The notes below the pieces were generated by a model. It saw only the letters and a program-made list of their open reading frames with translations. It was not told where the DNA came from and did no database searches. A DNA stretch of 64,000 nt from Lytechinus pictus. Lineage: Eukaryota. The position numbers and the translations under genes are program-made. Below are positions 47,722 to 53,708 of this stretch, piece by piece. Position 1 is the stretch's first letter. Each line of letters begins with the position of its first letter. Where the stretch lies: assembly GCF_037042905.1 (NCBI RefSeq), contig NC_087246.1:13392001-13456000 (forward strand), read 5' to 3'.

Positions 47722-48890
47722 ATGACTTCTCTGACTTCAAAGTACTTACAGGTATGTACATATTGATATTAATGGTCGTTTCTCTATAATAACAAATGTT
47801 ACTTCTTCCTTTTGGTTTTTCAAATTGGCTCAACTACACTGTAAAAATGATTGGGTAAAATTTTAAACAGCACTAGGGTAATTATGTGTCCAACCAATTT
47901 GGGTCAGTATTTTACACAAGGCGGGAAGCATATATATTGTCCAGTAAGGTTAATAAATAAGCAGCAATTACTTTAGAATGGGCAAAATTTTCATCCCACT
48001 GGATGAATAAAAATGCCCAAAAGAAATTCCCAATGTTGGTTGGACACATAAATACCCTTATGGATCATTTTTACCCAATATTTTTAGAGTGTAAAGAAAC
48101 TGTACAATTGAATATAGATATTAAAGCGCAGTGTGTTTGAAAGAGATTATATTTGATACTGATTCATGGCCTGTAGTCGTATGCATATTTTGGTTTCATT
48201 AAACTAATTGTGACTTCTTTTTCTATTTCTTTCATTTGTCAGCTTCCAGATGCTAACTCGTGTGATATTGGCAAACCAAGTCCACTTGCCATGTTAGCTG
48301 CAACCTGTCGAAAGATCGGCACATCACCAGGCGTGTCTTCTCGTCGAGTGCCGAGGATACCTTCACCACAACCCCAGCTCACTCCGTTGTCGACGACCTC
48401 GCCTGTTTCTACATCATCATCCTGTTCGTACCTTCCACCTACTCCACCACCGTCACCACACATGACATCGTCATATCCAGCGTTGTCGGTATCACCTGAG
48501 CCTACCGAGTTGTCAGCTCTCCGATCAGTTAGCCCGATCATCCCTGGTCATCAGCCATGCTACTATCCTCTTTATCAACCTGTTATGCGGTACTCTCCTT
48601 ACTCTACTACACCTCTATCAAGACCAAGAGTACAACCATCATCCATGAGCTACCATCTAGCTACCACTCCATACTCATCGTGTACTCCTGTGGTTGTACC
48701 AGTACCAACATTCAACCACACGCTTCATTCATCATCGTCACCACCCATGTTCGGGGTCTACCCTCATCATGACCAACCCATCCATGCTACGACGTCGTCA
48801 ATGAAGGTCCGCCCTACGAGGAATCAAAGATCACGCCGAGTGGTAATCAAGGATGAGGAAGAGGAGATCATCGATGTCGTATCGCTCTGA
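47722..48890 (+). CDS. Zinc-finger-less Sp5-derived Sp-box protein, copy 1 (exons 47722-47751 and 48243-48890; 225 aa)
   Basis: MTSLTSKYLQ|gtatgt...tgtcag|LPDANSCDIGKPSPLAMLAATCRKIG...RRVVIKDEEEEIIDVVSL*. Sp box present, no C2H2 fingers. Confidence 0.85.
47837..48091. mobile_element. CACT-terminus MITE (CMC/EnSpm-like) in the intron of copy 1
   Basis: ta|cactgtaaaaa...tttttagagtg|ta. The empty site (caacTAaatgaaac) is visible in the introns of copies 2 and 3. Confidence 0.85.
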
Positions 48891-49356
48891 AGAATATAGA
48901 CTTTGTTTTGATATGGTATACGTAAATAATATATTTGAGATTTGAAGTCGCTTGTAGCGACCTCATGTCTTTAGTTGTGAAATAAATCTATTCGAAAATG
49001 CATATCTTGTCTTAAAAGGTCTTTAACTTTGGCGTCAAGCTATTTAGCAGGGGCATATACTGGAACTTGACTTCGAAAGAGTTAAGATGGGTTGCATTTG
49101 CTTGTATGTGCGAAGTTGATGGAGTAAAATAGTGCAAGGAGGTGGAGGAGGAGGAGGGAGAGGGAAAGCAATCGAGGGCAAGTGTGTGTGTATGTGAGGG
49201 AGGGCCAATCGAGGGACAGAGTGCGTAAAGTTGAGAATTAAATGGGTGATGGTTCACTTCAAACAGTGATACCGACTTCAGACAGACAAATGTTGTATCA
49301 TCAGAAATAGGCCGTAATGTGTTAACTTTGATCGATCCTGGGTCGGTTTAGTTATT

Positions 49357-49389
<33 letters not shown>

Positions 49390-49862
49390 GGGCAGTGCAG
49401 AAGGGGATGAGAAGAAGAAGACGAAACGCTAATAAATATTTACAGGCGTGAAATAAGTTTAAGTGATATATATTTGAACAAAATCCTTCAAATAAATATA
49501 ATAATGCGAGTCACTTATTCCAGTGTTTAGAGTTCAGATACATGTAGAACACGATTTTTCGTTTTATATTATCATTTAATTTATTGTTAAAATAGCAGGA
49601 ACATTATTTTCTTTCATTCAGGGTTAACTTTTGCGTCGCTCTTTTTTTTTTCCTTTCCAATCATTTGCATCTCTTTCCCCCTTCCTTTACTTCCCCCTTG
49701 ATATTTTCCTTCTCTTTTTCTCTATTTCCACTCCCTTTCTTTCCCCTCTCCCTTTACACTATCTTTTTTTTTTTTGGGGGGGGGGGGGCGAGGCCCCTTC
49801 AGCCCCTAAAGGTCCCCACCTGAATTAAATCATAACAATACCAATATTTCAATAAAAATACA

Positions 49863-50043: not shown

Positions 50044-50504
50044 AATATCTAAACGATTTCATTTTTTTAGCCGATTCTTACAAGAAGTTAAACTAATCTG
50101 AAAGATCAACTTGATGCATTGGTTGCTTTCAAAACCCAGAAGGAACCCCCTCTCTTGATTTTTTTCTCGATCTGACTTTTCCTCCAGTTTTCTTAAATTA
50201 ATTTTGTAAACTAATATAATCGTGTTTCTGCGATTAGTATGAAGTGCATCTCACAATATAATATCTAGTCAACCAAAAGTTGATATCTTTCAAGATTTTT
50301 AAATTACGGTAAAGCCCCCTCCCCCGTCAATCCCATCAGGCATCAAACATACAGCGGCAATATCTACATATTTTGTACTCTGTACGAACTTCGAATTTAA
50401 TCTATCAAAGCCACCTCCCCCGATAATTTTCGAGTTTGCCCCTTAAAATGGTCACCCCCGTTTAATGCAACTGAACAATACACTCTCTTCCAAACGTCTC
50501 CCTG

Positions 50505-50930
50505 TCTATTGTCCGGTCATCAAGCTGGTCAAACCTTCCTATAGAATGGATTACCTATCAGGTCATTGGTCAGTGTCCTGTCACTGTAGACCAGTCTGGA
50601 CAATGGTCAAGGGTCTTTGATTGGTCAATCATTTGATTGATAAACTTGGTTTTAAGTTAACGGGAAATCGGAAAAGATCAGAAAACTCTTTGATTCATTG
50701 ACGTCTTGAAATTCATTTAGTATTCTTTTCGTATACCTTTAGTACCCTTTCAAGCCTTTAATATCATAATTAAGGGCAAATTAGCTATCGTTACTTGATT
50801 TGGAAGTAGAATTGACAGTTTGTACATATTGTGATGAGGCATATAGAAAAGTAGTTTTTATTCCCCGCACCTCTTCCATTTATTTATAATATGCGATTGT
50901 TTTCGTCATTCTAAAAGATTGACAGTTTAT
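50505..50930. promoter_or_regulatory. Duplicated conserved non-coding block, candidate enhancer (second copy 55415-55826)
   Basis: High identity between array units amid diverged flanks. Contains CTTTGAT sites, TGACGTC, ACAATGG and AGGTCA. Confidence 0.45.
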
Positions 50931-52813
50931 ATTTTCGTGGATTTGTAAAGAAAATTCATATTCTTTGAAAAGATTTGATTACCAATGAAGTCTACTTTAT
51001 TGTAAAGTTAAAAACATATCCGTAGCTTTGAGAGTTATTAGAATGGCACTTAAACACAAATTGTGACATCATATATCTTGTGGTAAGAAAATATAATTTA
51101 AAAAAATGAAAATGCTTTTTTAGCACCTTAAACATATTAGCTGACATTTTTTTTCACCCCCGCTCGAAAAAGATACTTTAGTCATCATGAACCATTAAAT
51201 AAAAATTATGGATTTCATATTACAATATGTGGTAGCTGCTCGATACGTATATGACGTCACATTTACAAATTCAAACTCTAATAACTCTTTTGATATTTTA
51301 TGGATTTTTCCTCAAACCTTTCCCAGTATATTTTTTTCATTTAGAGTGAACTTCCGCTTTCCAATTTGTGTCTTTTTTATAAGGATATGACTTCTCGTTC
51401 CTTTCCCATCATTTGCATCTCTTGCTCTCTCTTCCCCCTTCCTTTACTTCACCCTTCTTTCTTTTCTTCCCTTTCCCTTTCATTCTCTTTCCCTCCCTTT
51501 TCTTTCCACTCTCCCTTTACATTCTCCCTTTTATGGGGGGGGGGGCAGGCCCCTTCAGCCCCCAAGCATACCCAAAACACTCACGATGAGGAGGCACATA
51601 ATAAAAAGGATTCGTTTTATTTGATATAAATACAATTTTGAATATTTTCAAACACAATTTTCATGCATGGAATGGGCTGAAAATTTTGGGATGTAATTTT
51701 TGTATGTAGCCTTCAGATGTCTAAGGTGGTCAAAACGGGGATGGGATATCAAAGGAAAAATAGAAGCATTATCGAGAGAGAACTTTCTTAAAGTATCAGT
51801 CATTGAAAAAAATAGAAAGGCCAATACATCTTCGTGATATAATAACATGATATGATACTGAACTATTAATGACCTTGTACAAAAGTTTAACATAGGCTTT
51901 AAATATCTAATTACAGATTTTCCTTCGTTATTATTTTTTTCTTCAGCTGCAGAATTACCCCCATCTCTGCTTTATTGTTCAGGGGCTTCCAAGAAGCAAC
52001 ACATTTAATCAATCGAATTCAAACTGTTTGAAGGGACACATTATCACGGTACAGGTAACAGGTAATTTAAAAGTATCGTAATAAGACCTTACTGAATATG
52101 TTATGTGTTCGTTCATATTCTTTGATATCTTAATCAAATTAATCAGTATTCTGTGACTACTTAATGGAAGTGTACCAATTTATGTGTCGAAAGTAACCAT
52201 ATCATTCTGAACCTATATGGCAATTAAAGACTAAAGAAAATCCAATCGAGATGGGTTGAGTACCCTAAAGTTTGACTCTCATTTCCTGTCCTTTCTGTTG
52301 AAAGTATAGACCTATTCATTGATAAGTGTCACCCAGCTGGACGAGTATCCTTCTATCTTTTGTGTTCTTGCCTCCATGTCACTATTCAAACCCGAGAGAT
52401 GACCCGTCCGTTGTGACTGGCGAACGACCTGTCATTGATAAGCATCGGACAATGGCCAAAGATCCTCCCATTGGTCAGACTTTGTGATGGTTGAACTTGA
52501 CAGATAGAAGCCCGGGATTAGCGGCGTAGGATCAAGATCAGACGGATCTTTGATGTTACCGGCTCATTAAGTCATCCAGTGGGAGATGAAAGGATTCATG
52601 AACGAGTTTGGTCAGTTAGGATAAATAGCTATCAAATTCTCGACATAACATCATTTATGCTTTGAGCTTTCGCCAGTGCACAACTACTACAACTAACCCT
52701 GAACACTATCATTATTGGTCATCATTACTTCAGGTTATAAGAGTATATCATTACAACTTTACACCTTGGTATCTGTCTTGGACTTGATTTAAGTGGAATA
52801 TTATATTGGCAGC

Positions 52814-53708
52814 ATGGCTTCTCTGACTTCAAAGTACTTACAGGTATGTACACATTGACATTAATTGTCGTTTCTCTCTTACAATATCAAATCTTGCTTC
52901 TTTGGTTTCTCAATCAAGCTCAACTAAATGAAACTGTACAATTGTATAATAAATATTAAAAGTGTAGTGTGTTTGATAATGAGTCATGACATGTAGTGTA
53001 TGGATATTTCGGTTTCATTAAACTAATTTTGATTTCTCCCTCTTTTCTTTTATTTCTCAGCTACCTGAAGCTAGCTCGTGTGATATTGGCAAACCAAGTC
53101 CACTGGCCATGTTAGCTGCTACCTGTCGAAAGATTGGCACATCAACAGGCGTGTCTTCTCGTCGAGTGCCGAGGATACCTTCACCACAACCACAGCTCAC
53201 TCCCTTGTCGACGACCTCGCCTGTTTCTACATCATCATCCTGTTCGTACCTTCCACCTACTCCACCACCGTCACCACACATGACATCGTCCTCTACAGCG
53301 TTGTCGGTATCACCTGAGCCTACCGAGTTGTCAGCTCTCCGATCAGTTAGCCCGATCATCCCTGGTCATCAGCCATGCTACTATCCTCTATATCAACCTG
53401 TTATGCGGTACTCTCCTTACTCTACTAAACCTCTATCAAGACCAAGAGCACAACCATCATCCACGAGCTACCATCTAGCTACCACTCCATACTCATCGTG
53501 TACTCCTGTGGTTGTACCAGTACCAACATTCAACCACACGTTTCATACATCTTCGTCACCACCCATGTTCGGGGTCTACCCTCATCATGATCAACCCGTC
53601 CATGCTACGATGTCGTCAATGAAGGTTCGTTCTACGCGGAATCGACGATCACGCCGAGTGGTAATCAAGGATGAGGAAGAAGAGATCATCGACGTCGTAT
53701 CGCTTTGA
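52814..53708 (+). CDS. Zinc-finger-less Sp5-derived Sp-box protein, copy 2 (exons 52814-52843 and 53061-53708; 225 aa)
   Basis: MASLTSKYLQ|gtatgt...tctcag|LPEASSCDIGKPSPLAMLAATCRKIG...DEEEEIIDVVSL*. Intact and the same length as copy 1. Confidence 0.85.

Follow-up and report, generated by a model that had tools for sequence, protein, structure and literature searches.

Evidence for motif-focused purifying selection on a tandem array of finger-lacking, Sp5-derived genes in the sea urchin Lytechinus pictus

Introduction

A stretch of 64,000 nucleotides from Lytechinus pictus (NCBI RefSeq assembly GCF_037042905.1, contig NC_087246.1, positions 13,392,001 to 13,456,000 of the forward strand; hereafter the window) contains the first three copies of a tandem gene array whose proteins are, judging from their sequences, paralogues derived from Sp5 and not SP transcription factors. 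Six gene copies make up the array, which spans approximately 36 kb of the genome, and five of them have an intact second exon of 648 nt; copies 4, 5 and 6, all intact, lie just past the end of the window. The analysis reported here indicates that this is probably an array of finger-lacking Sp5-derived genes kept by motif-focused purifying selection, the products of which may have a docking or decoy role.

The SP subfamily of the KLF/SP factors is characterized by an SP box, a Btd box of the form C-x-C-P-x-C and three C2H2 zinc fingers (PMC4558859). As a conserved effector of Wnt, Sp5 patterns the primary axis of the sea urchin (PMC10765061). No function of the Sp box is established; it has been proposed to take part in protein turnover (PMC5168829), and its function is also given as unknown elsewhere (bioRxiv 10.1101/265785). 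Literature searches found no paper on the genes of the array, and their database names are automatic only ('Sp5-like', 'extensin' and 'RPB1-like'). An earlier note, made from the letters of the window, compared copies 1 and 2 by eye and claimed purifying selection on both, concentrated on two terminal motifs and favoring functional proteins over a decaying Sp5 fragment. In this study, these claims were examined using codon models, related arrays in other sea urchins, RNA sequencing (RNA-seq) reads and profile searches.

Results

Exon 2 of copies 1 and 2

Each gene of the array consists of two exons and encodes a protein of approximately 225 residues; the copies in the window lie on the plus strand. 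In copy 1, the coding part of exon 1 (MTSLTSKYLQ) was assigned from the sequence to positions 47722–47751, with a GT donor directly following at 47752. It is succeeded by a 491-nt GT..AG intron (47752–48242, also from the sequence) and by exon 2, which comprises 215 codons and a TGA stop (48243–48890; open frame and RNA reads). Codons 10–26 form the Sp box, GKPSPLAMLAATCRKIG (48270–48320), identified by its fit to the published SP-box consensus, and codons 205–215 form the C-terminal motif EEEEIIDVVSL (48855–48887), identified by conservation and by alignment to the tail of Sp5. In copy 2, the coding part of exon 1 (MASLTSKYLQ, 52814–52843) has its 3' end fixed by the RNA joint 52843>53061; the 217-nt GT..AG intron (52844–53060) is spliced in RNA-seq reads, and exon 2, again of 215 codons and TGA (53061–53708), is supported by its open frame and by RNA depth. 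Its Sp box and tail motif lie at 53088–53138 and 53673–53705, respectively. The exon-1 pattern is present in all six copies of the array, and its position in copy 1 is that of the RNA-verified exon 1 of copy 2.

Exon 2 of both copies is 648 nt in length, stop included, without an indel, as had been claimed. The approximate earlier count of 17 silent and 13–15 replacement differences proved close: 32 codons differ by one base each, 18 silently and 14 by replacement. The six silent changes reported for the two motifs were found in full, namely codons 15 (CTT/CTG), 20 (GCA/GCT) and 25 (ATC/ATT) of the Sp box and codons 207 (GAG/GAA), 211 (GAT/GAC) and 215 (CTC/CTT) of the tail, with no replacement in either motif. 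Local alignments of the intron and the 3' flank of the two copies likewise contain the indels that had been described there. The introns (491 versus 217 nt) are 75–77% identical, with seven gap openings in addition to a 256-nt insertion; the 3' flanks are 71% identical with 15 gap openings in BLAST alignments, and the upstream regions are 86% identical with two gap openings. A global MAFFT alignment of the 3' flanks overstated their divergence (K of approximately 0.5), and the local BLAST alignments were used instead.

By the Nei–Gojobori method the pair has S = 171.5 and N = 473.5 sites, dS = 0.113 and dN = 0.030, giving a dN/dS ratio (omega) of 0.27 (one-sided Fisher test, p = 2.6e-4). The pairwise Goldman–Yang model with F3x4 frequencies gave kappa = 1.65, dS = 0.092, dN = 0.034 and omega = 0.37, with a likelihood-ratio test (LRT) statistic against omega = 1 of 7.47 (p = 0.006); with F61 codon frequencies omega was 0.38 (p = 0.007). 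The dN/dS comparison that the earlier note had proposed therefore places the pair at 0.27–0.37, distinguishable from 1 at p <= 0.006.

Selection across copies and species

The five intact copies together gave omega = 0.49 (LRT 9.9, p = 0.0016). Twelve copies from three species, comprising five from this genome, four from Lytechinus variegatus and three from Strongylocentrotus purpuratus, each from the array of its own species, gave omega = 0.51 (LRT 25.5, p = 4e-7), and pairs formed between Lytechinus and S. purpuratus gave 0.28–0.37 (LRT 20–33, p <= 1e-5). These LRTs model codon frequencies and the transition/transversion ratio. The multi-copy estimates were obtained by fixed-tree M0 codon likelihood, which reproduces the IQ-TREE GY+F3X4 result (lnL -2207.93, omega 0.511); tree-based tests presume no recombination and are approximate given the gene conversion described below.

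The copies could alternatively be decaying Sp5 fragments in which the silent excess reflects chance or mutation bias, and an overall omega of approximately 0.5 is indeed high for a coding gene in which no Pfam domain is recognized. However, omega = 1 is rejected for the pair, the five copies and the twelve copies at the p values given above, and the family, which is at least as old as the split between Diadema and the camarodonts, is still intact, transcribed and spliced. Decay is thus refuted by the tests run, within their assumptions, and is regarded as extremely improbable. The proteins are probably functional, as had been argued from the sequence: omega is significantly below 1 for the pair, the five copies, the twelve copies and the comparisons between genera. 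Purifying selection probably maintains a functional gene family here, and the evidence for it is firmer at the level of the family than for any single copy.

Location of the constraint

The constraint had been described as concentrated on the two terminal motifs. With five copies this part of the claim stands, and further internal blocks were found to be constrained as well. Among the 28 Sp-box and tail codons no column varies in amino acid and eight vary silently, compared with 35 and 22, respectively, in the other 187 codons (Fisher test, p = 0.0012); each motif is free of replacements in all five copies and has four silent-variable codons. A two-partition model of the five copies gave omega of approximately 0 for the motifs and 0.55 for the rest (heterogeneity LRT, p = 0.002), with the non-motif codons still below 1 (p = 0.009), and the twelve sequences gave 0.10 versus 0.57 (p = 9e-5). 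For the pair alone, the contrast between the motifs (no replacement, six silent) and the rest (14 and 12) is borderline (Fisher 0.024, LRT 0.06).

To guard against circularity, 63 conserved columns were defined from 17 urchin sequences from outside Lytechinus only. In this genome these columns hold four of the 35 amino-acid-variable columns, where approximately ten were expected (p = 0.014), and 12 of the 30 silent-variable columns; omega for this genome's copies is 0.17 in these columns versus 0.62 in the others (p = 0.004). The blocks that are kept as far as Diadema are SKYLQ-LP, the Sp box, LPPTPPPSP, HQP..YQP..RYSPY, FGVYPHH, SSMKVR..R..R and EEIIDVVSL. An AlphaFold2 model built from an alignment of 24 sequences (mean predicted local distance difference test score 54, predicted template-modelling score 0.14) contains no fold, and its sole helix covers residues 14–21, within the Sp box; the array protein is accordingly predicted to be almost wholly disordered. 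The moderate overall omega is explained by a protein that is a string of short linear motifs. Selection acts mainly on these motifs (omega of approximately 0–0.17), and the Ser/Pro-rich linkers evolve at about half the neutral rate or faster (approximately 0.55–0.62).

Conservation could in principle act at the nucleic acid level, through RNA structure, regulatory DNA or homogenization limited to the exon, with the open frame being incidental. In line with this, exon 2 of copy 1 is only approximately 5% from that of the other copies, whereas its promoter and intron are 15–29% from those of every other copy, L. variegatus included, and its dS (approximately 0.09–0.11) is about half the flanking divergence. 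The constraint nevertheless follows the reading frame, since the third positions of the motifs are free (the eight silent-variable codons noted above, without a replacement), and in Diadema and other urchins, whose DNA has long been saturated, the protein motifs are still recognizable at 38–44% identity. Exon 2 contains no indel of any length. Furthermore, strand-specific RNA-seq under the same species label has depth only over the exons and in one orientation; antisense open reading frames (ORFs) of 100 codons at 48239–48541 and 53057–53359 have no reads in the opposite orientation and are therefore unsupported. Conservation of the nucleic acid alone is very improbable.

Reading frame and transcription

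Across the five copies exon 2 has no indels, compared with approximately seven expected (P = 0.001), and across copies 2, 4, 5 and 6, the young copies, none compared with 5.5 expected (P = 0.004); the expected numbers were scaled per substitution from the promoter and intron. Substitutions that create a stop codon are also absent, compared with approximately 2.9 expected (P = 0.05).

The intron of copy 2 is skipped at its GT..AG borders by eight reads with six start points in run X12, by one read in X13 and by one contig in X1. Letters private to copy 1 were found in ten of 13 RNA reads at 48475 and in 18 of 33 at 48572; read mapping is ambiguous between copies that are 95% identical, and cross-mapping is evident.

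Young copies, gene conversion and time-dependence

Pairs that include copy 1 have omega values of 0.27–0.49. Several observations weigh against selection on every copy of the array. Pairs among the young copies have omega values of 0.54–1.34, none of which is significantly below 1. Counted as silent and replacement changes, respectively, the private changes are nine and four in copy 1, three and eight in copy 2, five and seven in copy 4, one and four in copy 5 and zero and eight in copy 6, with 12 and four changes common to two copies; pooled over the young copies, the private changes amount to nine silent and 27 replacement. Substitutions among the young copies number 54 in the 648 nt of exon 2, compared with 49 in 617 nt of promoter and intron, so that the exon is no slower to change than these non-coding parts. 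Informative sites of exon 2 fall into eight different two-copy splits, and 68 of 105 site pairs fit no tree, so that exon 2 is a conversion mosaic and conversion blurs which copy was selected. In addition, the intron of copy 1 has no spliced read at the listing threshold of the RNA-seq data, and the broken state of copy 3 means that copies do die.

Much of the signal of the pair is from the lineage of copy 1 and from older shared variants. Because conversion can import sequence that has already been filtered, the excess of silent differences in the pair is proof of selection on the family and not strictly on either gene. A branch model gave omega = 0.25 for copy 1 and the internal branches (p = 0.002 versus 1) and 0.63 for the young tips (p = 0.10 versus 1), the difference between the two having p = 0.08. 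The arrays of other species show this pattern too: omega is 1.04 among the S. purpuratus copies and 0.49–0.77 among the L. variegatus copies, and replacement and silent changes stand at 71/50 within arrays versus 29/39 fixed between genera (p = 0.048). In the 12-sequence tree terminal and internal branches do not differ (0.55 versus 0.47, p = 0.58); the contrast shows only when copy 1 is set apart from the young copies, and is borderline.

These data bear on an alternative in which selection acts only on the whole array or on one or a few master copies, the silent excess of copies 1 and 2 being inherited or converted from lineages that were filtered earlier, and copy 2 and the other young copies being redundant and drifting neutrally toward the fate of copy 3. 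The private changes of copies 2 and 6, the neutral ratio of the pooled young copies, the absence of an omega below 1 among them, the difference between the tips and the older branches, the excess of replacements within arrays over that between genera, the extensive reticulation and the breakage of copy 3 would all be expected from it. On the other hand, recent replacements shun the distantly conserved columns (four of 35) and silent changes do not, the young copies lack the indels expected of them, copy 2 is transcribed and correctly spliced, and both motifs are free of replacements in five of five copies. This alternative is considered unlikely, and selection on the family, focused on its motifs, is preferred. 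Turnover of the array would then consist of duplication, gene conversion and occasional loss of a copy, with linker replacements building up nearly freely in single redundant copies and being cleared over longer times by conversion and selection on the family.

The flanks differ in affinity. The 3' flank of copy 1 (48891–49400) matches in type the one that follows each of the four L. variegatus copies (K of approximately 0.09–0.12), copies 2, 5 and 6 have a different 3' flank in common (53709–54220 in copy 2) and copy 4 has yet another. The promoter and intron of copy 1, by contrast, are distant from those of every other copy in both species, as given above. The units of the array are mosaics.

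Descent from Sp5

The canonical Sp5 of this genome (C1:36437612, locus L016) is a single gene on one contig, C1, whereas the array is multi-copy on another chromosome-scale contig, C2, and its proteins have approximately 225 residues compared with approximately 400 for Sp5. The two are collinear, with a single gap of approximately 130 residues over the Btd box and the zinc fingers. Sp5 has the motifs LPPTPP, YSPC, LGLYPHH, ARRCRRCRCPNC (the Btd box), three C2H2 fingers and the tail SEDEIVDVTSE; LPPTPP, YSP(Y/C), (L/F)G(L/V)YPHH and a basic RR.RR patch occur in the same order in Sp5 and in the array. Their Sp boxes are nearly identical, (Q/K)PSPLAMLAATCRKIG, and both have a candidate splice acceptor AG 11 codons before PSPL, which in Sp5 is a prediction from sequence. 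The SP-box consensus S/T-P-L-x-phi-L-x-x-x-C-x-R/K-phi (PMC4558859) is fitted at all positions by SPLAMLAATCRKI, which is invariant in five of five copies. The acidic-hydrophobic tails also resemble one another (EDEIVDVTSE in Sp5, DEILDVTS in the starfish Sp5-like protein XP_033629290 and EEEIIDVVSL in the array), and the starfish ending indicates that the tail is ancestral to Sp5.

The Btd box was not found in the array proteins, in which RRCRRCRCPNC of Sp5 is matched only at its basic start by RNRRSRR, without a Cys. A Pfam search found no zinc fingers in copies 1 and 2, L. pictus P0002, S. purpuratus P0009, Diadema P0016 or a further paralogue on contig C3, compared with three zf-C2H2 stretches in the Sp5 ORF of this genome (E = 5e-15). 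A Pfam match of copies 1 and 2 to FXR_C1 (E = 0.039, 14.6 bits versus a cut-off of 28) was rejected as a low-complexity match.

The paralogue on C3 (C3:8307043–8307846; L015:1501–2304) represents a second, more divergent fingerless Sp5-like lineage and is the sole such match in the genome search; its exon 2 is identical by eye to that of L. pictus LOC129256558. With an N-terminal query from the array it is the best match outside the array (E = 1.7e-5), followed by Sp5 on C1 (E = 3e-4). Together with its orthologue in Diadema setosum, XP_072180147, it shares with the array the Sp box, LPLTPP, FG(R/V)Y.HH and the lack of fingers. The tails of this lineage are EEIIDVVSV (VDEEIIDVVSV in the C3 paralogue) and EDIIDVVTV, and its proteins have 276–284 residues, with approximately 33% identity to those of the array.

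A profile search of 1.84 billion representatives returned nine clusters, none of which is both fingerless and known from outside the sea urchins, although such a search does not prove the absence of fingerless forms in other groups. P0026 and P0027 resemble N-terminal pieces of Sp5, and the starfish hit is an Sp5 of full length. A dozen relatives from ENA assemblies (P0011–P0022), at approximately 40% identity, are seemingly intronless; in the gene of P0015, 756 nt for 251 residues, the MASHLASKYLQ-LPDD junction is contiguous, and a reverse-transcriptase gene of the long interspersed nuclear element type lies on the same 21-kb contig.

Other features of the array

Copy 3 (59217–63271, plus strand) is broken. 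Its exon 1 lies at 59217–59246, and exon 2 survives as nucleotides 1–97 at 59464–59560 and approximately 368–648 at 62991–63271; the middle 270 nt (98–367) have been swapped for approximately 3.4 kb of foreign DNA, which makes it a pseudogene. This insert, which an earlier note labelled a Polinton fragment, contains one ORF in which Pfam recognizes PC4, the transcriptional coactivator p15 domain (60657–61022, E = 5.5e-13), and an acidic ORF of 189 codons at 61271–61840.

The insertion of approximately 256 nt in the intron of copy 1, which is not in the other copies, is bounded by inverted repeats at 47835–47897 and 48036–48093, each of approximately 60 nt and 81% complementary (47835–48093 overall). 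In sequence it looks like an element of the miniature inverted-repeat transposable type, other copies of which appear to be transcribed elsewhere, because RNA reads that enter it carry on into dissimilar sequence at 47892 and 48091. Between copies 1 and 2 lies a near-perfect palindrome of 144 nt (49886–50029) with 72-nt arms that are 93% complementary and abut without a spacer. Every spacer of the array contains a pyrimidine-rich repeat ending in a run of G and '...ccccttcagccc...', at 49600–49830, 51400–51570, 55083–55352 and 57609–57857.

Tandem arrays of this gene were also found in L. variegatus (at least four copies), S. purpuratus (at least four) and D. setosum (at least two). Exons at 29206–29996 of the window match a CDP-alcohol phosphatidyltransferase gene that is found directly upstream of the S. 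purpuratus array (81–87% amino-acid identity), and this common neighbor shows that the synteny of the array is conserved. In the L. variegatus locus that was retrieved, the 6 kb preceding the first copy are collinear with positions 41038–47295 of the window. Between copy 6 and L. pictus P0002, five of 225 residues differ.

Discussion

Transcription factor paralogues that lack their DNA-binding domain and evolve in a tandem array under concerted evolution are of a known kind; the present case, and an architecture reduced to motifs, appear to be new. Because the fingers have been lost, the array protein would presumably be unable to bind GC boxes. In the nucleus it could then act as a docking or decoy protein for whatever partners bind the Sp box and tail of Sp5, competing with Sp5 for these partners or borrowing them, at a dosage set by the copy number of the array. 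In this way it would modulate the output of Sp5 and Wnt, or take the partners elsewhere, and its basic patch, RNRRSRR, might mediate import into the nucleus. This mechanism, which is drawn from the retained motifs, is put forward tentatively.

Id/Emc helix–loop–helix proteins and plant microProteins are natural transcription factor paralogues that have no DNA-binding domain and work by titration of partners. They resemble the array proteins in that a paralogue of a transcription factor retains its interaction modules without the DNA-binding domain. However, Id/Emc proteins and microProteins retain a folded dimerization domain, whereas the array proteins are disordered chains in which nothing but short linear motifs is kept. 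We know of no dimerization of fingerless proteins with Sp5.

In MYC, the sequence EEIDVV of box IIIb binds WDR5, for which its I and V residues are needed (PMC10279693). The tail of the array proteins is similar in sequence, with an IDVV core after acidic residues (EEEEI-IDVV-SL), and differs in that its motif lies at the extreme C-terminus instead of internally and has an additional Ile before IDVV. The same tail also fits a SUMO-interaction motif. A strong decoy effect is spoken against by engineered Hydra and zebrafish Sp5 without the DNA-binding domain, which was inert in zebrafish development and on Wnt3 reporters (bioRxiv 10.1101/265785). That sea urchins, ever since their major lineages separated, have kept arrays of these abundantly transcribed genes as natural competitors or adaptors for Sp5 cofactors, namely an Sp-box partner and, for the tail, WDR5 or SUMO, is a possible but doubtful interpretation.

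If it is true, the Wnt/Sp5 circuit of axis patterning would gain from the arrays a layer that is tunable by dosage and has not been described, and the function of the Sp box would become accessible for the first time. The family may be regarded as a natural deletion experiment, in which the Sp box and the Sp5 tail are nearly all that is left, and which points to a function of these motifs that is independent of DNA binding; its small proteins are available for finding the partners of both. Furthermore, the time-dependence of omega would be a clean example of a redundant array that tolerates replacements in single copies while the family stays constrained.

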